A DNA stretch of 64,000 nt from Botryllus schlosseri. Its lineage: Eukaryota. The stretch is taken from positions 1,426,001-1,490,000 of the forward strand of contig CM119371.1 of NCBI GenBank assembly GCA_051294905.1. The letters are read 5' to 3'. The position numbers and the translations under genes are program-made. Under the pieces are notes generated by a model. That model was given only the letters and a program-made list of their open reading frames with translations. It did not search any database and had not been told where the DNA came from. Shown here one piece after another: positions 1 through 54,933 of the stretch (position 1 is the stretch's first letter; each line of letters begins with the position of its first letter).

Positions 1-439
1 ATATGTAGAAGTGGATAATATAATTATGACACCAAAATATAATTCTAACATCTGTGGTCGCACTCCTTTTGTGCTTATGAGTCAACATCTCCTTGGCTTC
101 CAGAGAAACCCGAATCAAGATGTAAAAATGATGAAGCAAATTTCAAAGTCTACGTTTACGGTTAAATCGCTCGTATTCCTCACAACGCTTACACAGGATT
201 GTCAGATGGCGACTAAAACAAAGCAAGCATGGCATTTCGCCAACGTATATCGTTGGTCCGGCCATTCATCGTAATTTCGCCAATTCGGTTGTTTGCGAAT
301 AATAAAGGTATTGATGGAATAGAACCAGATGGCCGTGATATAACGTGATTATTATAATGCGTATAGGCTTTATAATCAAGTATTCAAGTGAAAAACAAGG
401 GTGTTGATTTTAAGGAAATATTTTGGAATCATTTGACTG

Positions 440-499
440 GTCCGGCCCGCGAATGCTCTGAAAGTTTGACCATGACCCGCGACGACAGTTGAGTTTGAC
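440..499. mobile_element. Right end of a Buster/Charlie-type hAT MITE
   Basis: GGCCCGCG subterminal motif then AGTTTGACACCCCTG (TIR CAGGGGTGTCAAACT); the same end recurs at about 35280-35340. Confidence 0.6.
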
Positions 500-694
500 A
501 CCCCTGCTTCAGATGAATAAATTACCAGGAATCACGAACTCCGCAACTGCGGTGGATATCTCGGGCATGGAATGGAACTTAATTCATGTGGATGGGACAC
601 GTACTGTGCGGCAGAACTCAATGATAAATGTGCGATGGTGTGAGGAGAACGTTCAGTATATCAAATGCAACTAAAACTGGATGATAAGTACTAC

Positions 695-3600
695 CTTCTT
701 TTGCTGACAAGCTTCTAACGTCTTCCAGAATTCATCTGCTTCTCCAACGTAAAACATGGCATGGATATTGCCAAAAACGGAAATTGCTGTCCTGCGCTCC
801 AAAATTCGGCTGTAATCCTGGTCAGGTATCAGGCCATTCACGGCAATATCCAGGAGATCCAACTAAAATGCAAAAACAGTTTATCCCGGACTCAAATATA
901 GCCGCGGAAGAGATGATTGGTTTCAAGTCGTATAAAATGATAGGTAAATATACATGCGTTTAAAAATACTTTGGGAATAGAATCAGGAATCATACTTGAT
1001 ACTTTTTCCAGCAAGTCTCAATCAGCGTCCAATCAATGATTTCTTCTTTTTCTGTGCAATCGAGCAGGATCTTGCTTATCTAAACACAATATTGATTTCA
1101 TTACGTAAGATGACGAAATTGTCTGCATGTTTTCCTATTTGAATAATTATTCATATCGGTAAAGTTCAATACTGATCCATTAGAATTCTTCGATTCTCCA
1201 TAATGCATATGCTACATCAGTATTAGTCTCATTCCAGAGAATTATTTTATCTCAAGTAGAAGTGAAAGTAGCGATTCACAATTAGGTAAAATATAATTAT
1301 TGCAGGCCTAGTTTTGCATGAAAATGAAATCTGCCAAATAGAAGTAGTATGAAATCTTAACCACTTGAGTACGCAGGAAAAGTAGGATAAATCTACCTGA
1401 AGTATTACGACAAGTAGAAGTACATTGTTACTGACCACCTCTAGATAAATGTTGTAAGGAACGCTGGATAGCCTATGTAACGATGTCGCTTATGTTTACG
1501 CCAGTGGTTCCCAACCTGTGGTACGCGTACCACTAGTGGTACGCGAAGGTCTTCCAGGTGGTACGCGAGTAGATTCTGTTTTTCTTTTCGACCGAAGCAA
1601 GTTATTAGTTTAGTTGGGTTGATTTTGAATTTTTTCAATGTTTTTTGACTAGTGGTGAAAAAACAATTCCATGCATCTCATCAACCCGGGCTGATAATGC
1701 CTAGTTCAATTGAATTTGTTATTACTAGGGCGATTTTTCTTTACAAAATTGAGCGTGAAGTCAAAAAATTGTCAAAATTGTTCACAAAGTCAAAATTTTT
1801 CGGACCCCTCCATTTCGTTTGTATCATAGATTTTGATATTTTACAGCTGGTAGCCCACTTTATAGGCCTACCGTTGTAGGCGGCCCATTGTCTGCTCATC
1901 GTGGATCATAAACTGTCAAAAGAAACAAATAGGCTGACAATTGATATGTTGTTATGCTCAGCGTACCGCAATATCCTAACTGAAGCAAAACTGCTTGACA
2001 TTGCATGGTTATTTTATCAAGAAGCGCATGATGAAAAATTGTGATGCATGACAACATTGTCAGTATGAAGCAACAAGTTGTGTGACCAGCAATGTACGCA
2101 CAGCTTCAGTGGTGTCAGCCAACAACTACTGCTGTTAAACGGTATTTCTCCATTCTTGGCAAGTCAGGACAGACACTTTCTACCCGAGAATGTAAGAAAG
2201 TATATCTCGTTGTACTACAACGAATTTTAATTATCTCTACCATAATACGTGGTGTAACTACTGGGCCAGATATCTTTAAAATGAAGTTTTTCCATGTCAA
2301 AATTTGTCAATTTTTACGTCAAAAACGCTTTTTCGCAAGGACAGACAGTCCCAACCAGAAATGAATATAAGTAGTACAATTTTAACAATATGTGCGAAAA
2401 TACCTAATTTGCGTACGTGAAGTTAAAATCAAGTATTTTTAGGTCAAAATCCTCCGATTTTTAGGTAAAAAATCGTCCTAGTTATTACACCTCACTTAGC
2501 TCAAATACGTGAGTATGACGTCATAAATGGTGAAAACATTTTTGACCGCCAACGGCGTGCGTAAATTATGTAGGTGGTACGCGAGCACTGCATAAAACCT
2601 CGAAGTGGTACGTGGGTGGAAAAAGGTTGGGAACCACTGGTTTACGCAAAGGATTAATTTTATCCAGACAGTAAAACATCTTACAATCTGCGTAAAAACT
2701 TGCACGGACAGAAGCATACCCTATGTTAAATTTTATCTACCTGCTTTCGAAACCAACATTTCGAGCTGGCATTGTTGTTTTTCGCCTCAGACTGCTCCAA
2801 TGCTTGAGCGCACATTACGAGGTGAACAGTAACGATCTGCTTTTATTTCTTGAAAGTGAGTGGATATACCGATTTCACTTATGAAATTGATGCAAAATTA
2901 TGCCTGAAAGGGGCACTGCACTCTAAAAATGATGTGGTCTTAAATTGAATGGCAAAACGAAAATAAAAATTTGGCCACATCCATTTTCTTCAGAACGCCA
3001 CCGTAATGGAGCTGCAATTTATTGAAATTTCCACAGGACCTTCACGCTTCAGCAGTCATACAGAGATCGAACTTTATATAGTTGTCAGTCAATGTTATGA
3101 AGGAAATATGTCGTACATGTCAAGGTGGTTTAAATACCGTGTTCAACGGAAGATGCTCAGTGAGGAGATTTATGTCAAAATTGGGCATAGTGTAATCTAT
3201 TTCTTCAGGACAGAAATAGATGATGCTCAACAATTTTCTTATAAATAAACAATATTTTATGCATAAGAATAAGACATGATTTTAGACTACTTTCACACAA
3301 AATTGCTTACTTTTCACGGAATGGATTTTGATAGATAGAAAGTGATTGAGTTACGTTTGTATCACTGTGATGTGTGAAATCGTCTCAAGAAATCGCAATA
3401 GACATCATGGTAACTGTTGAAGCTAATTTCCAAGATTATACAAATTTGCAATAATAATCATTTTTAGTTACTCGCAGAGACTCATCTTGTAATTTACAAA
3501 GTAACCGCTAGCGATAAATCACAAAACACTTACGAGCGATCGACCAAAACTACTTTTCGAAAAGCAAGTACTTTTCACACTTGTCACTTTCTACCTCAAC

Positions 3601-4711
3601 TTGAAGTAGTTTTAACACATCGTGGACACATCTATTTCTCCATATAATTGCATATAAAATTAAAACGTATCTTCTACTCATCACGATTATCAAGGCTGAC
3701 TACTTTCGCCACATCTACGTACAATCGAGACCCGACTCGCAATACTAGAGATGCAAGTAGAGTAGAAATTGAGAATGGAAGTTTTTGTCGAACAGTGATG
3801 AGCGGATTTGAAATTTCAAAATACAAATCCTCTTCAAATCCATAATTAAATTTGTCTTAACTCCAAGTACAAATCCGATAACGGCTGAAATTTGTCCAAA
3901 AGTATCATGGAAATAAAACAATATCAGGAAATATTTTACAATAATATAATAGGAAATGTATGTAATACCTTGTTTGATTTACACTCGGATAATTTCTGCA
4001 AATCATCCCGCTTGGCGAACAGTTGTATTTGTCTTTTAAAGTTGATAAATTCAGCATCAAAAAGTATTCCAAGAAATGCAACGTATGCTACGGTATAAAC
4101 CCGGTTGAACGATAGATTGGAATCCTGCAAAAATAAAAATGTAAGTTACGTCACAATCTGCTTCAATACGAAACACTCAGAGGTACGATCATACATGAGC
4201 AGATTATTGTTACTATTCAATTCTAGTGCGGGTGAAGCGATGGCTATGATGCTTGTCCGTTGGAAAATGCGATGTGAAAGAAACACAATCCTTATATTTT
4301 TAAAGATGTAACCTAACATTTCGAATGGACTTGATCATCAAAGTACAGTGCCGACAATTCTTTTAATAAATTCATCAGGTAAAAACTCTTTACTTATAAA
4401 ATCAGCACGAGTTGTTAGCTTACTATTCTCAACAAAAGCATCTCGTCTCCATGACGCTTCTGATTACGTCATAAGCTACATCCTGGCTATACTACACGGC
4501 AAGGTGATCGTTGTACGTGCCTAGTGTAGCTGGCAGCTTCGTACAGTAAAGTCAGTGAAATGAGCGAAACTTCATTCGAATCATTAGTATGGACTCGTTA
4601 TCAAAGTTGAATAATCTTGATATCAAACCTTGATGGTGAAGTGCCCATCAACCATTGTACCACTTATTGTGATGATGTCTTCTTCGTTCTTCAATTCAAT
4701 CCCCCATATAT
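695..4711 (-). pseudogene. Multi-exon protein-coding gene of unknown family, probably decayed; likely continues beyond these coordinates
   Basis: Clean AG/GT-bounded open exons: 4711-4629 (IWGIELKNEED...FTIK), 4124-3969 (DSNLSFNRVY...KSNK, 52 aa), 2836-2741 (IVTVHLV...FRKQ, 32 aa), 1079-996 (ISKILL...KKYQ, 28 aa), 862-695 (LDLLDIAVNG...QQKK, 56 aa); most are phase 0-0. Intervening exon-like blocks (4480-4320, 3884-3600, 3245-2960, 1260-1110) stay open only with frameshifts or across stops. Confidence 0.55.
1502..2639 (+). mobile_element. Non-autonomous hAT (Buster/Charlie) element with transposase C-terminal relic
   Basis: TIRs CAGTGGTTCCCAACCT / AGGTTGGGAACCACTG; perfect 8-bp TSD GTTTACGC; GTGGTACGCG subterminal repeats; ORF 2092-2364 has CQPTTTAVKRYFSIL, resembling the hAT dimerisation-domain P..S...ER.FS motif. 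Confidence 0.9.
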
Positions 4712-5235
4712 CTGCAGACAGGTTGACAACCTGAATATTATGCAGATGTGAAACTTGGGATTGTGCATTGTATCGATCATCCAACAAATATCATGACGTC
4801 ATATCTTACATACAGTAACAACCGCAGTATCACAGATCATCATGTCATTCATGTGCTATATTTCGTTGACACGGGTCACAGATTTCACTGACGTTTTTGC
4901 CGGTGGTGGTATTTTGCTAATTTAGTGGCTCGATATCTCCAAAAATACTTGTTTATATGAGGTAAGAAGTATAATGGCGGAATCCGTAGAAAAAGTAGAT
5001 TATGGATACGAAGATATTTTGGGCAATATAGTTGACCTTTAATCAAATCGTAAACACCCGGAACCGTATTCCTGCATTGACACGAATTCATGAGCTGTTT
5101 TCGTTTTTTAATCGTAGCGCGAAAATGGACAGTTTCCTATTGTGAGCATATAAATCGGAATTACTCCATGGACATCATAGTGAGTCCTATATTACAAGGG
5201 AAATAAAACACTGAAGTCAAAAACGCTGTTATAAT

Positions 5236-5757
5236 TAGGGCTGAGCACAATGATTCGAGTGCACAAATCTGAATCGAATATCAATTTTGATGATTCAGGC
5301 CGAGTGGTAAAAGTCGTTTCTCAAGTATAGAAATTGTGCGTTCGTCGACACTGAAAGTTCCTTTATTGACAAAAATTGTGGTTTTGACAGTATTTTTCAC
5401 TTTTGAAGCCGTGAAATCACGATTGGTCGCATAGCAGCATATCAAACATATTGCACAAAGTTACGAACATTACTGGAATAACAAATTTTCAAAGTCATGA
5501 TCATGGCCTGAAATTGCAACAAACTGCAATGAAATTGGTACGTTCGAAAAACTACCGAATAATCTTTTTTGTGATACATAACAACAGTCATTATATTATT
5601 TAAAGTGACATAAAAGGTTCATATTTGAACTTTGACATATTATATTCTGTTATGACGTCATAACATAACGAGTGATACTCGAACAGTCGACTCGACTCTA
5701 AGCCTTATATGTGATTTAGAATTAAATCACTCAGATACTCGATTTTTCCCAGCCCTA
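5236..5757. mobile_element. hAT MITE, TAGGGCTG-ended family
   Basis: TAGGGCTG...CAGCCCTA ends; perfect TSD GTTATAAT; inverted homologues at 41104-41492 and 60632-61089. Confidence 0.9.
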
Positions 5758-6272
5758 GTTATAATCAGTGAACAATTTCGTCATGCAATGTCAAAATGAT
5801 CGTGTTGGTCTGAAAACCAGATGCGCACTTTGTTGAATAGGAGCAGTAATACTCTGTTGCGCACTAATTCATGTCGACATGCACACTTCTGAATTTTGAC
5901 GATGCTGACAATGTTACTTTTATTTACGCAGTGTGTTTTGTAGGGGCACGCGCCGTTTGCTTACGTAAATGTGACATAGTTTTTCAAAATATTGATGAAC
6001 AATTTGATCGTCGTCAGACTGCCTGGTATCGATCACACCAATATCGAATTTCATTACATTGCATTCATTTCATTCATTGTCAATGTAGTAGAAAGTTGAT
6101 TTTTGTTGATGACGTCGTGATATTAGCTCAGCGCTCTTATTTCTGCCACTACTTTACATAATCCCACATTTCACGAAATTCGATTACATAGCTCGATATT
6201 AATGACACAGTGCGGATATTAAAACATCATATCAGTGGGTAAATACTCTACGGCTTCGGGATGAAAGCAGAG

Positions 6273-7082
6273 TAGGACTGTTAAAAAAATTCTTCAGAAT
6301 CTACTGGATATGTGATAAAATTGTTAGGTTGGTTGAAACAACGCAGTAAACCAAATTTGGCTTCAAGTCCAACCAGTAGAAGCAAGAGTCTTGCTGTAAA
6401 AAGTTTTGAATTTATAATTAAAAAAATTCAAAGTTTTTCTTTCAACCCCATAAAATTGTTAGGCAATCAGTAGTGATGATACCAAATTTGGCTCAATTCC
6501 AACCGCTAGGAGCGAAGTTATTGCCGTAGTAAAATTTCCAATTCCATGATTTTATAGGAAATAATAATAGCTTTCAATACAACATCCATTGTAGTACAAT
6601 ATTTAAACTCAAATACTTTTCGGGACACTAAACCAAATCTATTTAACTCCCTTCTTGAAAGCGGCAACTAAAAAGTCTTCGAGTTCAATAAATATTCTAC
6701 TACAATGGATTTTGTATTGAAAGCTATATTCAAGTTCTGTACCACGAATCACCTATTTCAATAAATGATGAAAGAGTTAGCTACCGTAAAATTATTTTAT
6801 TCGAGTCTAAATTTTTTTCTATCGCAACAACTTAGCTTCTACTGGTTGGAATTAAGCCACATTTGGTCTGCATCGTCTCTACTGACAGCCCAACAATTTT
6901 ACGATATTGACAGAAAAATTTTAAAATATATTTTTGTAATGATAAATCCAAAATATTCTACTGCAAGAAAATCGCTTCTGCAGGTTGCAATTGATTAAAA
7001 GTTGGCGTGCAGCGTTGTTTTCGCCAACCTAACAATTTTATAACATAGCCGAAGAAATCGGAAGGTTTTTTGAACAGCCCTA
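6273..7082. mobile_element. hAT-type MITE with long (>130 bp) imperfect inverted arms
   Basis: TAGGACTGTTAAAAAA...TTTTTTGAACAGCCCTA; arms share TATGTKATAAAATTGTTAGGTTGG; TSD AAGCAGAG/ATGCAGAG (7/8); internal motif TTGGAATTGAACCAAATTT also at 41840-42040 and 58620-58680. Confidence 0.8.
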
Positions 7083-10000
7083 ATGCAGAGAATGTATGTA
7101 TAATGCTTTCTATCATTGACTATGGCGTCACCAATCACATGCGATTGTCACGTCACAAGTCACGCATACCCACATAAAATTATAGTGGCTTGTTAGTGCA
7201 CAACTAAATCATAGAATGGATCTCACTTCCCAATCCAATTTTCCAGATAGCGATTCAATCCAACGATGTCCGAGAAGTGAACGCAGTGCTGTTGCTGAGA
7301 ACTTATTGTCACACAAATTCACTTTCTTCACCTGGAATGATGAATGAAATATGATTACAATGTCTGCCAATATCATGTCAAAATATCAGAGCTTTGCACA
7401 GACTTATTCAGGATATATTTAGGAAGCTGAATATGTTCAACATCATTGCGATCCCCATAATAAAGGCAAACGACCCTAGGTTTAGAGCCACGGTCTTTTA
7501 CTAATCCATTCAAACGGCTTCAATCAATACACCGTAGTCTATAATTGAGATTACGATTTGATTTCAGTGAATGGCTAATTTTATTCACTTTCGATTTCAT
7601 TTTTGCGAGCGAGGCGGCCACAGTAGGATCAACTGCAATTTTGAATTGAGCTGCATGTAATTATATAAATTTTTTCATCTTATTCTAATTGTCATTGAAG
7701 CATTTCTATTCTGTGTAATTGTAATTTGATAAAACTTTTACTAATTACAATTTCAATTGCATTGTTATTAAAACCTGACAATCACAACATAAAATACTTA
7801 GCCTATTAACATGGGTGTTCTATGCGTACCTCGTTAACTAATTCAGCCATACTATACTGTTTCCGATAGGCCAACTTCAGCTCCAACATAAAACTTGGTG
7901 AATTACAATATAGGCTATCGAACAAAATCTTACTATTTCATAATTGGACGAAAAGGGAATAAACTCGTCTGTAATCCGTGCTGAACCATTTCCTACACCA
8001 CAGTAAGTGTTTTTTGAAATATCTTCCCAGTACTGAGGCTTGCTACCGCAATTGCAAAAAGAAATTAAAGTTTTCAACCAAGACTTCATCACGCTGGATC
8101 ACACATTTGTAGATATGTTATCCCAGTCTTACCTCATATCTTAGCCTAATTTACTGGGGCCAGAACCTTTCCGCATACTAATGTTCATCAAATGCAATCG
8201 AACAGTTTCGAGCAAGTGAAAATGTAGCTGCGAAACAAAATTTTGTAATTGGTAGTTATCAGGGGCTTCTTTACTTTTCCATTTATTTTAATTTTACTCA
8301 CCTTATCGGTATCATCCTTATCGCCTAACCAATTACATTTCATTCACCTTACTCAGCTCTGAGTATTTGTTTGAGTACATTTCATTGACTGTCTTGTATC
8401 ATATTCGCTATTAACCGTTGCCAGTCGCTCGAACTTTTGATTGTTAGTAGTCGCTTATAAAAAAAAATCAAAGCGCAAAATGGGAGGTAAGGCACAGGAC
8501 GGGACAAGCCTCCTTTATATTAGCGCAATAATCCATCGTAAATAGCTTTGAATCTATAACCGATATTAGTAGAATTGAATTGTCTCACTGATCCCAAAAA
8601 TCTAGATATTGATCGACTTCTCAAGTCTAAAAGTATTCAACGGTGACATAACGTTGCGCTATACGCCTACAATTTAGCGGCGGTAGTAGAAAAGTACTTT
8701 TAGCAATTAAGAACGTGGATATCGCTATGGTACTGTTCGTAAGTTGAATTTGTAAACGTGCATGTCACTTGCACGGCAGTTCATTTGTCGCAGCAGATCC
8801 AGACGAAAGTAAAGTGGGTCATTTTGATTCACAAATGATTTACGACATTACAGAAATTTCAGACTGCGCTAAGATACTATATTTCATAAGATTTGTTTGA
8901 CAAACACTGCGCACTTCCGCGTTTTCGATGTACGCAGATCGTGCAGCACGCGTGAAGATAGTTCTACTGGCATCCACCCGCAGTTCAAGTCTATAGTTCC
9001 AAGCTTTCGCCAAACCGGTATGATTACCTCTAGGGTTGGAAAATCTGCTTACTGATATAGTTTTATCAATTTTACTTCTCATTTATCAAATTGGCTTGTA
9101 ACAACGTTTTGCTACAAGCCCATATTTCAACTTCAGTGCAGGCACGTTATCTAACAATCACAATATGGATGGCTGGTTCCTAATTTGGATTGGTCAACGT
9201 TAACATCACTCCTAAATGAGTTCATTTCTACAGGGGCACTGTCATGTATGCTGTGACGAATAAACGTATTGTGCAAAAGCTAATCCAGCCTTCAAAGCAA
9301 TATGGCGTTGAAAGCGAACTACGATTAGATATTGATTGCCTGCATGACCGCAATTTTGATTTGTCAAATATACAAACTTCACATCGAACCCGATTTAGAT
9401 TATTGATCGTTTGCTATAGACTAGAAGTATTATACGTATAATTTCAAAATTTGCCGAATCTCTCGCGGCAGCCTCGCGAGACGTGAATGACACAAAAGTT
9501 TGCCGCAGTACACCGGTTGTAAACCACTGCCCTAGTCGTTCGTTTACTCTTTCAGTCCAAACAACTAGGTCGTCTAAATTCACTGTTGCAATTGTTATGC
9601 CACGTGGGCCTGTATATTGGATCACAAATTCGCTGCTGTGTGCGACGTTACTAGTTCCTGCACATTCAGAAAACAAACTGGCTATCAGGTTGTGGAATAA
9701 TTTTCCCCTAATAGCAGGGCTGTAATGACAAGAGTCATTACTCGACTCGAGTCACGATCTAGCCAATGTGAGGTCTACTAGCGTCATATATTGCGCAAAA
9801 TTTGCCAATTTTTTCCGCCCAGCAATTACATTAGGTCAATCGTCATTCGCGCGATCCTTGATTGACTCTGGATTAGTTTTTTTGAGACAGCAGTGGATGT
9901 CTATGTTCAGCCATCGGTTCGTGATATTGATTAAAATACTCCTGATATAGGCTATATCACGTATGTTCATTGAGCAGGTTGCTACTATATCGCTCCCATC

Positions 10001-10910: not shown

Positions 10911-11170
10911 TCACATAGTGATCATCGATGAGCCCTGGTAGCGCTCACGATCAATAATCTGTGAAGTTATGCAGATTTTAGATACATAAGTTTTATTTAG
11001 CCGACTGAATGTAAAGACTTATTTACCGGCCGTGTATGAATTTAAGATCTTTCGACTATTTCACCCCTTCGATTGAGATGATACCATCAAATTCATGATA
11101 AACTATAAGCGACCCATAATAATCAATCGGTGCTGCGGCAGAATAGCCGCGAAAAATCATGATTACTCAC

Positions 11171-12712
11171 CGCTGTGAAGTTTGCTATTAGATTTCATGT
11201 AAACGATGCCTGTAACGAATCTTCGAACCACGGACCATCGTTTCTCATGTAGATGTTGGCCATCAAAGCGAGAGAACATTTCGAGCTCCATTTCCGAGAT
11301 AAAACCAGCTGCCAGAAATTCCTGCATGCTTTGATGACAGAAGAAGAATGTAAAGTCGCCTTCCATCAAGTGACGGCTGAGGATGTTGTTGCCAGGCACT
11401 TTCGTCATCAAATCCTGTACTTCGTCCGCGGAAACTCCAAACCGATCCAAATCTGACTTGTAGAATACGACTCGTCCGTCTTTCATGCCTTCAAACGCCA
11501 TTGCCTTCAATTTGTTGATAATCGAGAGGATTTCCTTACGGTTTCGGATATTTTCCACACTCTGTAAGACTAACATGATCCTGCTGTACAGTTCTGTCAC
11601 GGTAGACGGAGGAGGTCTATCTGGATCAATTCCCATCACCACTGCTATCAAAATCAGGAAAACCGGGACCGATACTAGTTGTATTAATCGCGGTGACATG
11701 ATTTCAATCTTTTTCCAGAGACGCTGCCCGTTCTCACAGAGCAGAAAAGTAAACAGTTTATAAGCGTCTTGCAGTGTGAGACCATTGAGTGTGATTATTT
11801 CTTCTGGACGTGCCTCTGCCGGTAACTCGGAGACTTTGAATTCACGTGACGCCACAATGATTTTGACATGGCGAAGGATTCTGCGTGATAGGATGTTGTA
11901 CATGATGGTTGAGGTGCTCGCTTTATCAAAGATTTTGATATTTCGTATGGTAGACTCCTCAAAGTCCCACTTTACTTGATCAAGCCCGTCAAAAATGATA
12001 AGTGCTTCGGATTGATTCTCGAGCAGCCATTTGAAAGATTCATCCTCTTCATACTCAGTTTCAAACAGACCGCCGAATAGAAATTTGGATGCTTTCATAC
12101 AGTTCTGTTCTTTCATGTTCTTCAATTCGACGTAATGTATCATTTTTTGCTTCGATTTCGGTTCGGAAGAAGATTGTTTACCTTTTTCAATACCAGAAGA
12201 AGTTCTGAGAGCCATTCGGACAAGTCTACGGAAGAGATTCGATTTCCTTAACGGAACCGCTTCATCCTTTACCTTCTCAGAGGGAATTTCAAGCGCTTTC
12301 CGTGCAATTCTACGCACAAGAGTAGTTTTGCCAGATCCCGCAGAGGCGACGATTGCAGTGTAACCAACTTTATTGTCAGGAGGTAATTTCTCAGACTTTG
12401 ACAGCCATTCCATTATCTTTTCCATTGTTATCGGTTTACCGTCATTGTCGGATTGACGGTAAAACCCGACTTCCTCTATCAACTGACTTTTAAAAGCTTT
12501 CCTTCTAGATTCAAGACCATATTCATCATCTGAAGATTTTTTTTCCCGACGGCCTTTGTAGTAGTCATCTACATTGAACTTTTTCATCTGCGGGAAAACT
12601 TCGAAGTCAGGTTCGTGAGGAAATTCATTCTTGAAATCTTCGCGAATTCCATTTGCCGTTTCTTGTCGAGTATGGTCGTTTATAACCTTTATCAATTTCC
12701 AGTAATCTACGC
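11171..12712 (-). CDS. NLR (NACHT-domain) protein, large central exon of 1542 nt
   Basis: ORF track 11163-12695; Walker A ASAGSGKTT, Walker B ALIIFDGLDQ, sensor IIVASR, winged-helix motif FFFCHQSMQEFLAA; polypyrimidine acceptor TTTTTCTGCAG at 12713 and donor G|GTGAGT at 11170. Confidence 0.93.
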
Positions 12713-15288: not shown

Positions 15289-16411
15289 GGCACTTCTTCG
15301 TTATTCCCCACACATCGAAAAAATGATCCCCATGACACCAATAAATGTTTCCCCATGAACATAAACAGAAAAATTTATAAACGTCAAAATGAATTGTTTT
15401 TCGCGTTGGGGTGGGATAGACGGATATTAGGGAAGGGGGATATTAGGATGGGTTAGGATATCCTAAGATTAGGGTTGGGGATATTAGGGTCGGGAGATAT
15501 TATGGATGGGGAGGGAGATATTAGGGTGGGTTAGGGTTAGGATATCCTAAGATTAGATTTGGGGATATTAGGGTCGGGAGATGTCAGGGATGGGGAGGGG
15601 GATATTGGGGTGGCTTAAGATATCCTAAGATTAGGGTTGGGGAGATTAGGGATGGGGAGGGAGATATTAGGGTCGGTTAGGGTTAGGTTAGGATATCTTA
15701 AGATTAGGTTTGGGGATATTAGGGTCGGGAGATGTCAGGGATGGGGAGGGGGATATTGGGGTGGCTTAAGATATCCTAAGATTAGGGTTGGGGAGATTAG
15801 GGATGGGGAGGGGGATATTAGGGTGGGTTAGGATATCCTAAGATTAGGGTTGGGAATATTAGGGATGGGGGATATTAGAGTGGGTTTGGGTCAATGATGG
15901 GGTTAGGATATCATAAGATCAGGGTTGGCAGGGAAGATAACAATATTTCAAACCCTAATTTCGGGATACCCTGAGCCCAAATTTAACCCTAATCTCGGGA
16001 TACTCAACCTTGACCCTAACCTACCCTAGCACCCTCACCCGCAACCCTAATCTTAGGATATCGTAACCCACCCTAATAACCCCTTCCGCAGCCCTAATCC
16101 TAGGATATCCCAACCTTGACCCTAACCCATCGTAATACCCCCTTCCCCAACCCTAATATCTCCACCCAACCCCAAAAAAACCTTCCCACAACCCTAATAT
16201 CTCCCACCCCGACCCTAATCTTAGGATGTCCCAACCTTGACCCAAACCCTCCCTAATATTCCCTTCCCCGACCCTAATATTCCCCTGGCCCTAATCCTAA
16301 CGCTAAAAACAATTCATTTTGACGTTTACAAATTTTCACATGTTCATGGGAATCATTTATTGGTTTCATGGTGATCACTTCTGGATGTGTGGGGAATAAC
16401 GAAGAAGTGCC
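15289..16411. mobile_element. Foldback DNA transposon with telomere-like internal tandem arrays
   Basis: About 125-bp TIRs, first 28 nt identical (GGCACTTCTTCGTTATTCCCCACACATC); perfect 8-bp TSD AAATTCTC; G-rich TTAGGG-type array 15410-15930 facing a C-rich CCCTAA-type array 15950-16300. Confidence 0.92.
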
Positions 16412-19616: not shown

Positions 19617-20132
19617 TGAGGATTCTTGGAAACTAGGGCATGTAACTACTAATTAAACATATTCGGGTGGGTGAGCCCGTTGGTATGACTTCGTTGCATG
19701 ATGTTATTTCGTGACCCCCTGTCTGCAATATCAAAAAATATAGAATCGCTCATCGGGGATATCGCCCAACAGGAATATCCCTGTCGCCCAATTGTACTAA
19801 AGTAAACGACGCACACGATTTCAGATTGGTATTTCTTCACTGACATATAATTTTCCCTGACAGATGGAATTCGGCTTCTGGGGTTCAGATTGCCAAGACA
19901 GGAACATTCGGTGTCAGTCATTTAGGCGCCCATGGACAATTAAACCTATATGTATTTTGAAGGCTATATGTGTGGTATTGTGATGTGCATCATGTGAACC
20001 ATTGCACAAAGTAGTGTACGGCGGCGACCTTTAGTCGTGGTCGGGGAGAAGCAGGAGAGCTGTGGGGGAGTGTGCACGTGCTGTGTCAGTTGTCGTTGTT
20101 TTCTACTTTTGAATACATACATCTTTATTACA

Positions 20133-20144
20133 AGCTATCGCGGC
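20133..20144 (+). promoter_or_regulatory. Candidate non-canonical primer-binding site AGCTATCGCGGC
   Basis: Directly follows the 5' LTR; reverse complement GCCGCGATAGCT fits tRNA positions 1-12; no TGG-type PBS in the 16 nt before the gag ATG. Confidence 0.65.
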
Positions 20145-20148
20145 CAAG

Positions 20149-20925
20149 ATGGCAAACGTAATGTTGACGGACATCGTTAAGAATTATGTGGATTGGGAGA
20201 CGTCAGGCGACTTTGCTGAATGGATAGAGAAATTGGAATTGGTTGCCGAACTGAAAAAGATGAAGGGGTCTCTTGTGACTATATTACCGTTATTGCTCGA
20301 AGGGCCGGCATTTGCGGTGTATAAACAATTGTCCGAGGATACCAGAAAAGACTACGAACTGCCTAAAGGAGAAATGTTGGCAGCTTTTGGAGTGGATTGC
20401 TATGTGGCATATGAACAATTCCGTAACAGGGTACTTCAAGCGGGGGAATCAGTTGATGTATTTTTGTCTGATTTGAAGAGGCTGGGAACGTTGATAGGGT
20501 TGAGCGGGGCTGCGGCAGAGCCAATAATCAAGTGTGCATTCGTTGCTGGTCTGCATGCGGATGTCAAGATACAGCTTAAGTCTGTCGCCGAGGTGGAGAA
20601 ATTGGAGTTGAGCGCTATTGCAAAAAGGGCACGTACATTATTATCCACAAGAGATGGTGAAAGTGTGTTATGTGCGGCTGGGGCACGACGTAGAGTGGAC
20701 GGCCCCTGTTACAGGTGTCATAATGTGGGTCACATCGCCAGAGACTGCCCGAATGGAAATAATACTGGTGCTGTACGAGGCCAAGGATTTTATGACAGTG
20801 TCCAGCGGCAGTGCTTTGCATGTGGACAATGGGGACATATGGCCTGGCAATGTAGAGGATTGCCGGCTGCGGGAAAAGACCTAGGAGGGACGTTGGCACC
20901 GGACGTCCCCTGCGCATCGCACTAG
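20149..20925 (+). CDS. gag: Retrotransposon Gag, 258 aa, two CCHC zinc knuckles
   Basis: CYRCHNVGHIARDC and CFACGQWGHMAWQC; ATG 16 nt after the LTR; uninterrupted ORF. Confidence 0.9.
   Translation: MANVMLTDIVKNYVDWETSGDFAEWIEKLELVAELKKMKGSLVTILPLLLEGPAFAVYKQLSEDTRKDYELPKGEMLAAFGVDCYVAYEQFRNRVLQAGESVDVFLSDLKRLGTLIGLSGAAAEPIIKCAFVAGLHADVKIQLKSVAEVEKLELSAIAKRARTLLSTRDGESVLCAAGARRRVDGPCYRCHNVGHIARDCPNGNNTGAVRGQGFYDSVQRQCFACGQWGHMAWQCRGLPAAGKDLGGTLAPDVPCASH
20871..20877 (+). promoter_or_regulatory. Probable -1 ribosomal frameshift heptamer G GGA AAA
   Basis: XXXYYYZ pattern in the gag frame just after the second knuckle; a -1 slip enters the open frame GKRPRRDVGTG...VLPFVPVEICG leading to the protease. 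Confidence 0.6.
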
Positions 20926-20936
20926 GGGGAAGAAAG

Positions 20937-21796
20937 GTGCTACCATTTGTGCCTGTGGAGATTTGTGGCATTGTGACAAATGGTCTTGTTGACACTGGTT
21001 GTGAACAGTCAGTCATTCGTGAAGACCTGTGTAAGCAACTGGGTTTTACACTTGAAGGATCGTATGGAGTTGTAGAAATGTTAAATGGAGCACTCACTAA
21101 TTGCCCAGGGGAGGTTCGGGCCAAGGTGACGATTGATGGTGTTGTTGTAGAGACTGAGTTTTTAGTGGCTTCAGATTTGGTGTATGATGCAAAAATAGTT
21201 CTGGGGGACGATATGGTGAAAGCGCTTGGTGGCGTTGCAGTTGATGCTGAGCTCAACGCGAAGTTTGGGCTTCCAGTGATCAGGACATGTGCTGTGACAA
21301 AGGTGGTTTCAGAAAGTCAGCCAGTGGAAAAAGTTGACTGCGACTACCAAGCTATGTTTGAAGGGGTGAAGTGGACGGTGAACGATGGCGAGGTGCGGAA
21401 ATGGAAGAGAGATGGAGAACTGCCTGTGGTGGCAGAAACCCTGACCAAAAGAGAGTTATTTTCAGTCTTTGGGAAGTTGATTGGACACTACCCAGTGGCT
21501 GGATGGTTGAGAGTGGCATGCAGTTACGTGGAAAGACTAACCGACGAAGTTGAATGGGATGCAGTTGTTTCAGGACAAGTGAAGACTCTGGCCGGAGAGA
21601 TTATGGCCAAGGTGCGGAGACAAGATCCAGTCAGTGGGAGTTGGCGAATGTCTCCAGGTGGTCGGGTGGAAGTGTGGTGTGACGCGAGCAATCTGGCGGT
21701 AGGATGCTGCGTGAGAGTAAATGGTGCCGTTGTAGAAGACGCGGCGTGGATGCGGAAGCAGGATGATTTTATGCATATCAATGTTGCGGAGTTGGA
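20937..21796 (+). pseudogene. pol: Deleted pol: aspartic protease fused in frame to the post-RT tether and RNase H N-terminus
   Basis: Protease LVDTGCEQSVI; then KRELFSVFGKLIGHYPVAGWLRVACS and RNase H WCDAS...HINVAELD running into LTR sequence; no YxDD motif; only about 150 aa separate the protease start from the tether. Confidence 0.8.
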
Positions 21797-24700
21797 CACG
21801 TGCTGTGTCAGTTGTCGTTGTTTTCTACTTTTGAATACATACATCTTTATTACAATATGTAACGAAGTTTTCGGTGTTAATTTGCTCTGAATACTCATTA
21901 ATGATAAGTCCTATCACCTCATCATTTACTGCGAAGCCATTTTACTCCAGCGCCCCCCCCCCGTACCGCCCCCTGAGCCCAGCGCCCCCCATATCGCCCC
22001 CTGAGCGCTTCCGCCCCCCTTCAAAGTCGCCAGCGCCCCCTGGGGGGGGGGGGGGCGCTGGGGGCAAGGTTAAGAACCACTGGTTTAGACAAATTGTGAC
22101 ATTGCTAAGATATAAGTACGTTGTACTACTCTATTGTTACGAAATAAAACTGATGCGTAAGCGGAATACTGGTAATATATCTACTAAGCGCAGTGCAATA
22201 TTGGGTGAAAGTGCAGCGAGCACCGTAGGGTCCGTCCCGGATCTTAAGCAAAATCTACCGTATCATAAACGGAAAATCATCAATGGGCACACTGCTTTTT
22301 ACCGGTTGGAAATTATAATAACCTGTTAGCTTCTGAGGTAGAAATGGGAAATAAAGGTGTTAATACTACCCCTGTGATTCTATAAAATCGAACGAGTGAA
22401 TTTATATAAATTGTTACAAATTAGTGATGTGAATACTTATAAATACCGATATATAATATGTAAATATGTTTGCAGGCGAACTACAATGTGACACAATTAG
22501 GAAAAGGATTGATAAACGAGTCGGTATAGAAGCGGGAAAAACCGTAGCATTACAGTTATTATAACCAAACGATCATCGCCTGGGGACCCGTAATTCTAGG
22601 ATTTGGGTGCGCTGATGAATGCATAGCAACTATGGCTAACTGGCGCTATCTAAAATTCGGACCGTTGTGTATGTTTTGAGATATCACGGATTATTATCAA
22701 AATCTACGGACTGTAACGATGCAACGCAAAAGGTTTATATGAATCTTTTTATTTGTTGAAACCCAAATTGAAATTAAATTGAGGTTGATGACATCATAAA
22801 CTAGAAAATACATCACCAAGTTAAATGCCCGAGTGATGCAATGAGGAAGTTAGCTGAATTTAAATACCGGAAGCTTGGACATATGGCCATATGTTGATCG
22901 TCACACATTAGATATAGGATAATACGTTAGTCGCCGTCATTATTATATTAGCGCGGATCTAAACATAGGACGGTAATTCCAGACCTTTTTGGATTCGAGA
23001 AATAGGATAGTGTTAGGGGATATCAGAAGTCTATAGTCGGAGCTTAAAATGCAAATTTAATGATGACAAATGAACCGTGTTTTGCCAGTAGAAGCATCGT
23101 TGAACGAGATTAGTTGTATTAATTGTAAAGATGTTGTTGAGCAGTGTCAGAATGTCGTAATAAATGGAGATTTGAAACTGAGCATATTTCGGACATGAAT
23201 AAAATATGTCTTTATAGCTCATTATGGATAAGGATCGAGCATCCAGATATCATCAAAAATGATATTTACCAAAAGTGTATAGTTGTAGTCAGCAGTCTTG
23301 ACGCATTGTATTAAAGTTCGAATGTCATTTTGTTAGTGATATCGAAATAACATAATGCTTGTGAACCGAGTTATTAAGCTCTGTTTTATGGTGTCTTTAT
23401 ATGACCCTTTTAAAGCAATATAGTGTCAATTTTTGTCAAGCAATAGTGGCTACTCGTCCTGTATCATTATTCGCAATTTGTAAACAATTACGAATCGTAT
23501 ATTTGCCTATATGGTGAAATATTAATTTTAATATAACTATAGCCTGTAATGAATTGTATTTCGTATTTCTTGACTTACTTATATTGCACTCCAAAGATTA
23601 GATTGGAGATGAGGCACGGTAATTTAAGGGTATGACGTCATTTGATGTTTGAACTGTAAATGCCTGTATGCTTTACTGCATTAATTGAATATCCGTAATA
23701 TGCCAGTATTAGGAACAAGCATGCTTTTAAAAATTAGGACGACATATATCTGTTGGCGATAGCCGTATAGATTATGGATTGGTGTTTATGTATACTATAC
23801 AGCTTTCGTTGAAGTTGCAATTAACTGCCACGGCGGCCCATAAGACGCCTAAGCACACGTGTGTTGTTGCTAAACAACAGAGGTGTGATTACCCACCTTA
23901 TAAGGAAACATTATCTAATGTTATCTGGGAATAATGTCAGTATTGTAACCCAGAAAATAATTACGACAGAGTACATAGGGCCTTAGGCAGATAACTTCTT
24001 GAAGAAGGTCATTAATAAAATAAGGTGATCGTTTTGGTCAACCAACTACCGATAGGTGATTATTGAAAACCACCCTACATACAACCCAAATCTGACACGC
24101 TTGTTATGCGTAACAAAGGTGTCTGAAGCGAATGCGAAGGATTAGCGTATGGAGGCTAATCCCGGCTTATCTGTAATTGTTATGTACAATACATGCAAAT
24201 ATTAAGTTGCATTATAATGATGGCTCCGCCATTTTCGGTGTCTGCGAACTTTTACAGTGAACTGAAAAGGCGTTTCAGTGAATTGGCGATACTGTATGTA
24301 TTATATATTATCCGTCGTATTATTATATCCACACATTGCGTTACCCTAGAAAAACGGTTAATAAAATCAAGCCCAACCCCATAGAAGTTACATGATTACG
24401 TCTATATGTGAAGTCATTATTGCATTTGTTTTTGGGATCAATGTATATTGGAAATTGTGTGATTTTGTGTGGATTATTAAGGATGCGTCATAACTAGTTC
24501 ACGCCCAAAGCGACTAGGACCCCTACACTTGAGTGAGGTTGGACGGTTATAAAACCAAGACGAGTTGCTTGGGAGAACTGTCATAAGATTAGATAAGTAA
24601 CACCCTAGTATACTCGAGATTATACAAATACACAAAAACCTTGATCAGCCTTAAACGATAATGTGAAGATGTAATAAGCCCTTCGACGGAATATTAATAT

Positions 24701-39609: not shown

Positions 39610-42470
39610 GGAAGTTACCAGTGGAAGATTCCAATGAAGAAAAAACTGCGAAGAAACCCGACAAGTATATGTTATCTTATCGATATGACATTATATTGCA
39701 CGATAAATATTACCGTCCCGTCGCTGTAGTTTGCTAACGAACTGTTTTATGCCTTCGTGAAGCTATGCTAGTACCAGCAGCATAAGTTATCTCATCTTCC
39801 ATGAATTCTACTAATTGCGCAATTCCTGTACCGGGCTGTATATTCGTAACATATATTGCCACTTCAACTGCACGAAAATCGTACATTGCGTTACAGCGCA
39901 ATGAGAACATCCTGCTATTGCAACCTTTGATTTAATATCGAACACTAAAATGGAGCTCCTATTATGCATCGAATTCATATTATGCCTGTAAGGAGAGTAA
40001 TGGATCATTTTATACAATTACAACGTTTTCTGTACCATAGTTTTGTTGTGGCTGCGCAATCTCTAAATTCTTTACAACATTGCCTTTTCCAAGTGCTTTC
40101 GGCGCGTGAGGCGAAATATAAGTGATGATTAGTTCTCAGGAGTTCCGCCTGTGACGCATCACTATGGACGAGCTATCTGTCCGCCTAATAATTATCGTCA
40201 ATGCAGTGTACATTTCATCGTTACGACAAGAATCATGATAATATTTCAGTTGGCTGATGACAGATATTGGTGCCATAGGCTCTCTATAAGGATTGAGTCG
40301 ACATTGCCATGTCATTGAGTGTTTATTTTTTTATACGAGTCGTGAAATTACATATATCTTAGTTTTGACAAATTTATATGTCATGCATGGTAGGCAGGTT
40401 TATAGCACATTATATGAGTGGCAACTTAGCGGGGACACGCTACTTCATGATAATATATTATACTCAGGCTTTTGATTGAAGTGTGATATCAAATATTAAT
40501 GAGGAAAGTAGCCAGTGGAAGATTCCATTGAAAAAACAACTGCTGCAAAACCCTCTAATGCAGTGCTCTTCAACCGGGGTTGTCGTACACCCTAGGGTGT
40601 ACCAGAATTTGCAAAGGGTGTACCACTCAGATGGGGTGTACAGGGGTGTACCAGATCCGAATTACAATGAGCCGATGGCCAGCTATCACAAAGGCAGGTT
40701 TATGGGTCAGTACAGGTTGACGCACAGGTTGATGAGCAATATGGTACGATGTTATCTAGTGATTGTGATGTCATAAGCAAATATTTCTACTTTTCATTTA
40801 GCCGTCGGCAATACACCAATGGTTCCGTTTGGTATTGGAAAGTATGCAGTTAACAAACATGTGTTCAGCTATAGTCATTTGTCTTTTAGTGATTTTTGAG
40901 GTAACCGCCGCGATAGCTCAGACTTTTTGAATCGGTACTTCCTACCCGACGTTAATAAATACCGCAATGCACATAAATGAAGTGTCGTAGCCAGCCAGGG
41001 TCGAAACTGCTTCCATGTTGAAATCGGAACCCTTTTGTTTTAAAATGCCGATTTTATGTCCAATATTTCGCCATACATTTGCAATTTAGTATTTTGTTAT
41101 TAGTAGGGCTGGGCAAAATCGAGTACCTGAGTGATTCGATTCTGAATCACGTAATATGCTTCGAGTCGAGTCGAGTAATCGAGTATCACTCATTATGACG
41201 TCATAACAGAATGTAAAATTTCAAAGTTCAAGTTGTGGGAAGATATGACTTCAGCAATATGCTATTTCCAGTAACGTTCCGTTTCGTATGCTACGATACG
41301 GCCAAGCAAGGTTTCAAGGCTTCAACAGTGAAAATTAGTATCGAAACTAATTCCCGGTGATAAATTAACTTTCAGTCGCGAGGAGCGTATAATTTCAGTA
41401 CTCGAAAAAGTCGTCTTTTCCTACTCGACTCGAATCATTAAAATTAATACTCGATTCAGATTCGAGTACTCGAATCATTATGCCCAGCCCTAGTTATTAG
41501 TGATGCCAATTAGCGACAATACACTGTGTATAGCGGCATACGATCTGAGGTTACTGACATCTCTTCCAGCCCATGTGCTACTATCGACTGTGTGTGGTGT
41601 GGGGCAGGCCTGATACGCAGTGGACTGGTGCGCCTACCATCGCTGATCTGAATTACCGCTTCTGCAGCAGTAGCTTTACCTACTCTTTCCCCAATACTGT
41701 TACATTTAGGTACATTATCGTTCGTAATGTCATGCTGTTTTGGGCTGACACGAAATAAATACCAATTTGCGTGGCGGGCGGCCTAACTGGCTGCGAATAG
41801 ACTCTGTGACCAAATGCTATTATATTCAAATCCAATTTTTTGACGGCAATAACTCCGCTTCTACTGGTTGGAATTGAACCAAATTTTAAGAACATCTTTT
41901 TTAGAGACAACCCAATACTTTCATGGGGTGAACAGAAAGATTTCACATTTTTCGGTATTTATTTTTATATTATAAAGAGAAAGTTTCTTCTCCCGTAGCC
42001 ATGCGGCTACTGGTTGGAATTGAACCAAATTTGGTGTGTAGGCTTAAGTTAGGTAACCTAACCATTTTATCAAGTAGCCAGTACGATTTGAGGAAAAAAG
42101 TCATTTTTGAAGACCCCTAATGAACAGGGGTGTACGAGTTTTGAGCAAACGTTAAAAGGGTGTACCACGTCGAAAAAGGTTGAAGAGCACTGCTCTAATG
42201 CCATGCTATCTTGTCGATATGTAATCATATTACATAATAAACATTAGCAACACTTTGCTTTAGCTGTTCGCAAACTGTTTTATGCCTCTGTGACGCTGTG
42301 TTCATAATAGCAGTATAGGTTATCCAATCCAGCATAAACAATACTAACTTAACAGTGCCTGTACCAGACTGCATACTCGTCGCATATGCTGTCACTTTCT
42401 GCACGAAGCTCGGGATTGCGTTACATCGCTGCGAACGGATTCCTGTGCGGTGTACGAGCTCAGATGTCTG
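39610..42470. repeat. Old local direct duplication (39610-39930 versus 40505-40560 plus 42193-42470)
   Basis: Shared CCAGTGGAAGATTCCA.TGAA, AACTGTTTTATGCCT, CCTGTACC.G.CTG.ATA and ATTGCGTTACA.CGC; the second copy is split by the 40561-42192 hAT. Confidence 0.7.
40561..42192. mobile_element. hAT element with a nested TAGGGCTG MITE at 41104-41492
   Basis: CAGTGCTCTTCAACC...GGTTGAAGAGCACTG with TSD CTCTAATG; inner TSD GTTATTAG; both perfect. Confidence 0.92.
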
Positions 42471-46950: not shown

Positions 46951-47847
46951 AGTTAGTCAGTCAGACTGTAGCGTCAGCGTGGGGAACGGGGATCAGCTAG
47001 TCGGCAAAAGTATCATACAGATCTTTACCTTATAAGCAATGCAATGTGCCAATGTTCCCTTCCCTCTAAGCTGCGCACGTGCGCAAATCACGGAGCTATA
47101 TAAACACGAAAATGCGCAGTGATGACACGGTCTCTGCGCACAGAAAACCTAAGTTGCGCACAAAAAATCCTAAGTGACGACATTTTTTTAGTCGTTACGC
47201 ACTTTGTCCAAGGGTCTGCGCAGTGAGTTGGTGAGTGTGCGTGGGAACAGGGTCAAACTACAACCCAACTGAATTCGCCAGTGTACATTCTGATTCATTA
47301 ACTTTTGGATCGCCGACCCCTTCAACTTTATACATGCGCGTAATCGTAAAATCGCTCAGCCTCACGACCCTTTTAGATTTGTTTAGAGCCCCCCGAGGGA
47401 CGTCTTTTCATCAGTTTGTTTTAGTGATAGCAATAAAGCATTCATCTTCAATTTCTCGATAAGCTGATCTCACTCCATGTTTGACACGAGGCAGGGCAAT
47501 CGATGTACGTGAGGCATTATCGACGTCACCCAGGAGAAATACCGGCGTCAAATCGATAGCGGCCATTCAGATCGATATTATATCTACTTTATATTCAGTT
47601 TAGTTATTTTTAAGTGCATAATGTTATTATTGCAAAAGATGCGATGCGAATCATCGACATTTAGAAGAACTATACGGGGTATTCCCTAAAGCGAGACTTG
47701 TTTGTTTCTGGCGCAATAGAAAATAGAAATGAGACAGAATTGGATAAGGTGGGGTGCAAATAACCTATTTTTAGATCGAAAAAGGAGGTTCTCGAATCTC
47801 GACAAATTACCGGTAATTTCAATAAAATTTAACATTAGATGATTGCC

Positions 47848-48258
47848 TGTTGCGGTCGCTGAACTGCCTATGTGATTCTGTGTAAGCTGTCTTCCCTTGA
47901 ACTTACAGCGCCGCAAAGTCCTATAAGTTTCCCGATGTAAATATACGCGATCTTGAAGTATGGTAGAAACAGTATATTGCTTGAAGTTCCAATTGATCGA
48001 ATTTCCTTATATCCAAATATAATAAGACACGATAGTAGCACGAATAAGATATTGTCCCAACAAGATCGGTAGATACAGTGAGGGAACGTCCGGTGGGCCA
48101 ATTACTATTGACAAACTGTACCCTATCACAGCTATATCCAGAATATTCCCTTAGACCAGACCAGGAAGTATCGTCAAGCATACGCCATCTAGCGAGTACA
48201 AGTATGGCTCCTAAATTATTGAACCCCCCAAGATTAACATGAAATGCCCACAGTAACA
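47848..48258 (-). repeat. 3' LTR of the BEL/Pao element
   Basis: No difference from 54523-54933 found by eye; identical ORF translations in both copies. Confidence 0.95.
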
Positions 48259-48316
48259 TACCCCCCCAAAAAAGTTATAAAATGACAAAGAACTTTTTTG
48301 CAAATTAAGTAAAACA

Positions 48317-54268: not shown

Positions 54269-54522
54269 TATGAAACCAGAGTACACCAACTTACTGTTTT
54301 CTCCAACAGAAGTGTGTCCTTTCTCCAATATCAGTATAAATGAAGCAAGTCCTATTACCGGCACCAATCCACACAATATGGAATTGTCCTTTACTTATGT
54401 ACCGATAGTCGTCCTGTGTTACTGTTCCGCTTCCTGGCGTTGAATTGTATATTCCAATACAATACTCCACCAAGGGACCTTTGTTGTGTTTACTCCACGA
54501 CCGGACCTTTAGCTGTATCTAC

Positions 54523-54933
54523 TGTTGCGGTCGCTGAACTGCCTATGTGATTCTGTGTAAGCTGTCTTCCCTTGAACTTACAGCGCCGCAAAGTCCTATA
54601 AGTTTCCCGATGTAAATATACGCGATCTTGAAGTATGGTAGAAACAGTATATTGCTTGAAGTTCCAATTGATCGAATTTCCTTATATCCAAATATAATAA
54701 GACACGATAGTAGCACGAATAAGATATTGTCCCAACAAGATCGGTAGATACAGTGAGGGAACGTCCGGTGGGCCAATTACTATTGACAAACTGTACCCTA
54801 TCACAGCTATATCCAGAATATTCCCTTAGACCAGACCAGGAAGTATCGTCAAGCATACGCCATCTAGCGAGTACAAGTATGGCTCCTAAATTATTGAACC
54901 CCCCAAGATTAACATGAAATGCCCACAGTAACA
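54523..54933 (-). repeat. 5' LTR of the BEL/Pao element
   Basis: Upstream of the polyprotein ATG on the minus strand; TG...CA termini. Confidence 0.95.

Follow-up and report, generated by a model that had tools for sequence, protein, structure and literature searches.

In the textbook account, LTR elements prime reverse transcription from the 3' CCA end of a tRNA. In copia and Ty5, the primer-binding site pairs with an internal stretch of a tRNA (mostly the initiator tRNA-Met) that ends in the anticodon stem-loop, at approx. nt 39. The known exceptions, i.e., the half-tRNAs of copia and Ty5 and the self-priming of Tf1, have each been informative about the mechanism of reverse transcriptase (RT) and RNase H. 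Elements of C. albicans carry sites that match internal regions of tRNA-Arg(UCU) and tRNA-iMet (PMC4139406). Tf1 requires complementarity to the first nucleotides of its mRNA, and the fungal element GalEa has a hairpin primer site (PMC5445492). The BEL/Pao element Achilles has the tRNA-Tyr 3' end as its primer (PMC4580426), and in a broader BEL/Pao survey primer sites were not analysed (PMC3118150). For the annotation of such sites, a 12-nt search of tRNA 3' ends has been used (PMC13524379). Tools that test only tRNA 3' ends would report no site in the lineage described here, which carries a DUF7047 domain; thus, annotation pipelines would record no primer site for it, and it may be discarded or wrongly classified. 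In the literature on Troyka, Kuafuorterviruses, Odin, BEL/Pao, ERV priming, Culex, olive fly, and Candida, we found no published site complementary to a tRNA 5' end, and an older description in Repbase Reports or in subscription journals is possible.

The window analysed here is a 64,000-nt stretch of the Botryllus schlosseri genome (contig CM119371.1, 1,426,001 to 1,490,000, forward strand), and coordinates given without a locus name refer to it. At 19966-21859 it contains an LTR element in which the 5' LTR is followed directly by the complement of the first 12 nt of the host tRNA-Phe(GAA). We propose that the element is an internally deleted, further truncated, non-autonomous member of a compact LTR lineage, and that its site primes minus-strand synthesis from the 5'-terminal 12 nt of the host tRNA-Phe(GAA) and not from the 3' CCA end. 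Taken jointly, these two proposals have, in our estimate, a probability of approximately three in four.

Anatomy and lineage of the element

The element comprises the following features:

19966-19970, plus strand: left copy of the target-site duplication, ATATG, a pentamer repeated at 21855-21859
19971-20132, plus strand: 5' LTR of 162 nt, TGTGG...TTACA, 89-97% identical to both LTRs of the genomic copies L062, L063, and L069
20043-20047, plus strand: apparent RNA 5' end (U3/R boundary) inside the LTR, placed by RNA-seq template-switch reads and a depth step
20133-20144, plus strand: putative primer-binding site AGCTATCGCGGC, exactly complementary to nt 1-12 of tRNA-Phe(GAA)
20145-20148, plus strand: spacer CAAG, 4 nt, between the site and the gag ATG (20149)
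20149-20925, plus strand: gag ORF of 258 aa with two CX2CX4HX4C zinc knuckles (zf-CCHC), homologous to the gag of families B-E
20937-21796, plus strand: truncated pol in the -1 frame relative to gag, with a DTG protease, a deletion of the RT core, DUF7047, and the first part of RNase H (...HINVAELD)
21797-21854, plus strand: 3' LTR remnant, the last 58 nt of the LTR, repeating the 5' LTR end
21855-21859, plus strand: right copy of the target-site duplication, ATATG

The LTR boundary is independently fixed by the 58-nt repeat, by ATATG at both ends, and by the full copies found elsewhere in the genome. The LTR terminus, ...CTTTATTACA, lies at 20132, and the site starts at the next base with no spacer, so that the order within 20100-20160 is ...CATCTTTATTACA, AGCTATCGCGGC, CAAG, ATG. 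Inspection of the window copy revealed no TGG at or beside the 5' LTR end. The earlier note had described this junction in the same way (no TGG, the 12-mer directly after the LTR, then CAAG and the gag ATG), and its description is accurate to the base.

Three full genomic copies of 2.84 kb (L062, L063, and L069) have the same LTR ends and the same 162-nt LTR, and each is flanked by its own 5-bp duplication (GAATG, CTAAT, and ATATT, respectively). In all three, a polypurine tract, ...AGATCAGGGGGGAA, lies just 5' of the 3' LTR (TGTGG). The window copy is without this tract, which was removed by an internal deletion; approximately 955 nt have been lost between the RNase H region and a point inside the 3' LTR. 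The traits of an LTR retrotransposon are thus present, i.e., TG..CA direct repeats and 5-bp duplications in four copies. At 20112-20117, 15-20 nt before the LTR end, there is an AATACA-like, A/T-rich motif, with similar motifs in other families. If it serves as a poly(A) signal, cleavage would occur close to or exactly at the terminal CA, leaving almost no U5.

Both the RT core and the integrase (IN) are missing from the window copy. Since the 2.84-kb copies, at 96-98% identity, carry the same RT and IN deletions, they represent a non-autonomous derivative that has been propagated. An uninterrupted, autonomous pol is found in family B (L090:589-2970), which is approximately 79% identical at the DNA level and encodes PR-RT(YIDD)-DUF7047-RNase H-IN. 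Autonomous members are approximately 4.2 kb long and combine a gag bearing two CCHC knuckles, a PR-RT-DUF7047-RNase H-IN pol, TG..CA LTRs, and 5-bp duplications. The PR-RT-RH-IN order of domains indicates that the element is not of the Ty1/copia type.

Assignment to a superfamily is less straightforward, as Pfam, BLASTP, the PDB, and the protein atlas yield no clear answer. The Pfam signature of BEL/Pao (Peptidase_A17, DUF1759, and DUF5641) gave no match to the pol even at E<=1, and a BLASTP comparison of the lineage pol with that of the canonical BEL/Pao element at 47847-54821 was not significant. The lineage is thus without the canonical BEL/Pao Pfam signature, and it may still be a distant member of BEL/Pao. 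The Gypsy RT_RNaseH families (PF17917/PF17919) likewise had no Pfam match in the pol, and the lineage therefore fits the standard Pfam signatures of neither superfamily. Its RNase H matches RVT_3/RNase_H in Pfam, its integrase is nearest to the MMTV integrase among solved structures (PDB search), and the protein atlas clusters that combine DUF7047, RVT_3, and rve are eukaryotic, mostly arthropod. Odin and the retrovirus-like elements have a tether (a degenerate RNase H) and a second RNase H between RT and IN, as well as a GPF/Y motif in IN (PMC9040795, PMC12440569). In the autonomous family-B pol, approximately 165 aa separate YIDD from the DAS motif of RNase H, which is too short for a thumb plus a tether and argues against an Odin-type dual RNase H; no GPF/Y motif was seen by eye in the integrase. 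The earlier note had guessed at a Troyka-like element. The termini of Troyka are CG..CG, its duplications measure 3 bp, and its finger is of the form CX2CX8-10HX4C (PMC12440569, PMC11673190), and the TG..CA termini, 5-bp duplications, and CX2CX4HX4C knuckles found here rule out this identity; the guess was wrong with respect to termini, duplication length, and zinc-finger spacing (PMC12440569).

Several other features were observed in the same window. In the canonical BEL/Pao element at 47847-54821, on the minus strand, the LTRs show 100% identity across at least 300 nt, and the repeat reaches farther upstream than this. The element has an uninterrupted 2019-aa gag-pol ORF (48317-54376) with Peptidase_A17, DUF5641, DUF1759, RVT_1, and rve; from its sequence, it looks like a very recent insertion. 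Its 5' LTR is followed by GTAGATACAGCTAAAGGTCC..., with no TGG start. A 151-nt tandem repeat occupies 15440-15887, degenerate CCCTAA-rich repeats (interstitial telomere-like) lie at 16070-16280, and 11163-12695 on the minus strand holds a 510-aa ORF, an NLR-type gene fragment in which NACHT and NOD2 winged-helix domains are present.

The post-LTR 12-mer and tRNA-Phe

The tRNA-Phe(GAA) genes that ARAGORN calls at L012 and L013 start exactly with GCCGCGATAGCT. A pattern search of the genome, in which acceptor-stem positions 2-7 were left free, returned 68 exact-pattern tRNA-Phe genes, all of which (68/68) begin with GCCGCGA, as do four of the five near matches. Because all genes found by the pattern begin in this way, the site is perfectly complementary to nt 1-12 of the single tRNA-Phe species of the host. 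The earlier note had recognised the layout of tRNA nt 1-12 in the complement of the 12-mer and had called for a host tRNA starting with it. The ARAGORN genes bear out the first claim, and these genes together with the 68 exact-pattern genes provide the second.

The site pairs with the acceptor strand (nt 1-7), U8, A9, and G10-C11-U12 of the D stem. This pairing cannot be lengthened at either end: downstream it stops at tRNA nt 1, and upstream the ACA of the LTR is unpaired with C13-A14-G15. The complement of the tRNA-Phe 3' end, TGGTGCCGCGACC, is absent as a primer site, and a TGG at the LTR end is lacking from all 14 elements compared. No second conserved complementarity to tRNA-Phe, as in the bipartite contacts of Ty1 and Ty3, was found; additional matches of 7-8 nt occur in family C only and were rejected as such a contact because they are not conserved.

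With regard to the arrangement of the tRNA genes, approximately 45 tRNA-Phe(GAA) genes are arrayed in tandem on contig C12 (26.00-26.16 Mb) at a spacing of approximately 2.0-3.4 kb, most often 2.7 kb. At L013:1420-1573, a tRNA-Ile(AAT) gene ends 6 nt before a tRNA-Phe gene, and the shortness of this gap suggests a dicistronic pair.

Within the B. schlosseri genome, CA followed by the 12-mer occurs 83 times, compared with 0 times for the reversed control. At least five families (A-E) are represented among the first 30 of these loci listed. Their LTR ends and leaders are unalignable, their gag proteins are homologous, and all of them read ...ACA, then AGCTATCGCGGC, then N. When site positions 7-8 were freed (ACAAGCTATNNCGGC), 80 of the 83 genomic matches had CG, the complement of host tRNA nt 5-6, and the remaining three had CC, TT, and GA (one each); the reversed control gave 8 matches. 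Junctions were also sampled at the 5' end by DNA homology, and nine of 11 were intact, with single substitutions in the other two. Since junctions sampled in this manner are mostly intact, the site was not selected by the search. Intact autonomous copies bear the same 12-nt site and are without a TGG site, which disposes of the possibility, named earlier as a refutation, that intact copies carry a normal TGG site. The 12-mer also occurs at position 1503 of L052 and L055, where it stands after ...CTACCA, not ...ACA, and is itself followed by GGACCTCATTTTAGCAG with no gag-like ORF; these loci may represent a different element type or a chance occurrence.

Nine relatives, all with DUF7047, were identified by pol homology (43-61% identity). 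Their LTRs are 140-310 nt long and end in ACA, the 12-mer follows at once, and the gag ATG comes 3-20 nt later, a variable spacing that is also seen in other families. Their sites are as follows:

AGCTATTTCGGC: Watersipora subatra (bryozoan), Macrosteles quadrilineatus (leafhopper), two ENA contigs, and one NCBI contig
AGCTATCCCGGC: one ENA contig
AGCTATCACGGC: two ENA contigs
AGCTATCGCGGC: one element in two JGI metagenome samples (L096, L097)

These sites vary at two positions only (TT, CC, CA), namely those opposite tRNA nt 5-6. An information profile of 14 elements shows the same picture: only (T)ACA and the 12 nt are conserved, positions 7-8 within the 12 nt are variable, and the flanks are essentially random. 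The expectation that the post-LTR 12 nt would be kept in relatives is thus borne out, with variation limited to the partners of tRNA nt 5-6. In the order listed, the four sites are the complements of GCCGAAA-, GCCGGGA-, GCCGTGA-, and GCCGCGA-TAGCT. GCCGAAA is the usual start of the metazoan tRNA-Phe 5' end. The human tRNA-Phe 5' end is GCCGAAATAGCT, i.e., the GCCGAAA variant (PMC12025293). Among metagenomic tRNA-Phe(GAA) genes, at least 28 start with GCCGGGA and at least 98 with GCCGTGA. No tRNA-Phe gene was found beside the relatives' elements in 10 loci. The host-by-host match between site and tRNA-Phe is therefore demonstrated for B. schlosseri, and the other variants are matched to tRNA-Phe from human and metagenomes, not from their own hosts. 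By sequence similarity, the DUF7047 lineage is present here, in the bryozoan, and in the leafhopper, its other members coming from metagenomes or other assemblies. It should be noted that L096, a JGI metagenome contig, contains two copies of a related element head to tail (1-7776) that share the middle LTR; its self-match (1-3915 versus 3862-7776, 99.9%) is that of a tandem LTR-element array.

Proposed priming and competing explanations

It is from the position of the site that we infer priming, together with the place at which the tRNA is cut and the agent that cuts it. Minus-strand synthesis would start at the end of U5, beside the site. Because U5 ends there, the priming 3'-OH would lie on U12, paired with 20133, and the cut would fall between U12 and C13. 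The primer would thus be a 12-nt 5' fragment of tRNA-Phe (GCCGCGAUAGCU), cut in the D stem, much as the earlier note had proposed in suggesting a very short 5' tRNA fragment cut in the D-arm; this suggestion gains support here. Such a primer could arise by either of two routes. A short 5' tRNA fragment might pre-exist, or the 5' strand of the tRNA might anneal to the site with the help of the two-knuckle nucleocapsid and then be cut in place at the duplex end. A model for an in-place cut is offered by Tf1, in which RNase H cuts the element's own transcript on an 11-bp RNA duplex. Synthesis of the plus-strand strong-stop would proceed through all 12 ribonucleotides and end by run-off at G1 of the tRNA, from which a site length of exactly 12 nt would follow. 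The natural end of this product would then be the tRNA 5' end instead of a modified base. Within nt 1-12 of yeast tRNA-Phe, m2G10 is the only modified base known, and it still pairs with C. To our knowledge, tRNAs are not known to be cleaved between nt 12 and 13, inside the D stem, and we count this against the proposal. A broader reading, in which DUF7047 marks a metazoan-wide lineage of compact LTR elements that use the first 12 nt of tRNA-Phe, freed by a cut in the D stem, to initiate reverse transcription, seems to us an evenly balanced proposition.

The alternative that survives best is that the 12-mer binds the tRNA-Phe 5' strand, or a fragment of it, for packaging, for translational control of gag, or in small-RNA silencing, with another primer being used for reverse transcription. 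The gag ATG lies only 3-20 nt downstream, and binding at the site could affect translation. In addition, the RNA-seq data show no priming product, that is, no pile of molecule ends at 20144, in a library of a type that would not capture one. However, the site adjoins the LTR end in 14 of 14 elements, and the LTR end is by definition the start of the minus strand. There is also no other candidate site, whether a TGG, an LTR complement, or a second conserved tRNA complementarity. As for silencing, selection would remove such a target, yet the host-matched pairing stays perfect. We therefore regard a role other than priming as unlikely.

A second alternative retains priming and assigns it to another cellular RNA with the 3' end GCCGCGAUAGCU, tRNA-Phe being uninvolved. 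The 12-mer GCCGCGATAGCT occurs 533 times in the 495-Mb genome (13 for the control), and these copies fall into three classes: true tRNA genes, LTR junctions, and an abundant repeat of more than 1.2 kb. We rejected the 533 copies as a count of elements because most of them are in this unrelated repeat, the specific count being the 83 occurrences of CA plus the 12-mer. The repeat accounts for 24 of the first 30 loci listed among the 533, in two subfamilies, and could be a source of such an RNA. It contains GCCGCGATAGCTCAGAC internally, with 17 nt identical to the tRNA-Phe 5' end plus two bases. A copy is present in the window at approximately 40450-41700 (plus strand), where the 12-mer (40907-40918) is preceded by GAGGAAACC and is not at an LTR junction. 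The complementarity of the site, however, ends exactly at tRNA nt 1, whereas in the repeat the 12-mer is internal and follows ...AACC. Moreover, the relatives in other phyla have variants that match tRNA-Phe 5' ends known elsewhere. An origin of the primer in some RNA other than tRNA-Phe is, on this evidence, quite improbable.

Self-priming of the Tf1/sushi type, in which the element's transcript would fold its own 5' end onto the site and supply the primer after a cut, is suggested by a site length (12 nt) near the 11 nt of Tf1 and by the lack of a CCA-type site. The transcript start near 20043 follows from 45 RNA-seq reads with the SMART template-switch oligo directly before this position, where depth also rises approximately 10-fold. 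The exact start base is ambiguous within a run of G, and strand invasion by the oligo is a possible artefact; the depth step agrees with a real start. The expressed copy has fixed differences from the window copy and diverges from it after 20725, which means that the family is transcribed and that the transcripts need not come from the window copy. Starting at approximately 20043, the RNA reads GGGGAGAAGCAG and does not pair with the site. Furthermore, four LTRs, taken from different hosts, contain no sequence complementary to the site: the closest candidate has at least 4/12 mismatches, and the longest exact match is 5 nt. The lack of an LTR complement had already been reported for this element and taken as leaving self-priming unsupported; with the unpaired RNA 5' end, it excludes self-priming as far as we can judge, and we assign that reading almost no weight. 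The same negligible weight falls to coincidence, i.e., a conserved leader or packaging motif of only 12 nt that merely resembles the tRNA-Phe 5' end, given that every base matches, with the register fixed at nt 1 (a chance of approximately 4^-12 per tRNA species), and that the only variable positions pair with acceptor nt 5-6, with the host value in 80 of 83 matches and with values in the other relatives that all complement tRNA-Phe 5' ends existing elsewhere.

Comparison with known priming systems

If priming by the 5'-terminal 12 nt of tRNA-Phe is correct, it would constitute a further mode beside the tRNA 3' end, the half-tRNAs cut in the anticodon arm, and self-priming, and it would give very short 5' tRNA fragments a replicative function. 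The question is directly testable, as the host tRNA, a transcribed family, and natural site variants are in hand.

Among the known systems, conventional 3' CCA priming shares with the present elements a host tRNA, a site that immediately follows the 5' LTR, and a polypurine tract preceding the 3' LTR. In contrast to it, the site described here has no TGG at its start, and its pairing is with the tRNA's other end. Elements of the copia/Ty5/Tca2 type resemble the proposed mechanism in that the primer is a fragment of the 5' part of a tRNA and not its 3' CCA end, so that cleavage of the tRNA is needed. However, they use an internal stretch and a cut in the anticodon arm, whereas the complementarity found here covers tRNA-Phe nt 1-12 only, without a half-tRNA match, and the cut would lie in the D stem. 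In Tf1 and sushi elements, the 5'-terminal 11-12 nt (approximately) of an RNA likewise anneal beside the LTR, and a cut at the end of the short duplex yields the primer; the RNA is the element's own transcript in that case, whereas here it would be a host tRNA acting in trans, with no self-complement. Finally, as a little-known metazoan LTR lineage outside the textbook superfamilies, the elements recall Troyka and the Kuafuorterviridae, from which they differ in having TG..CA termini, 5-bp duplications, and CX2CX4HX4C knuckles rather than CG..CG, 3 bp, and CX2CX8-10HX4C.
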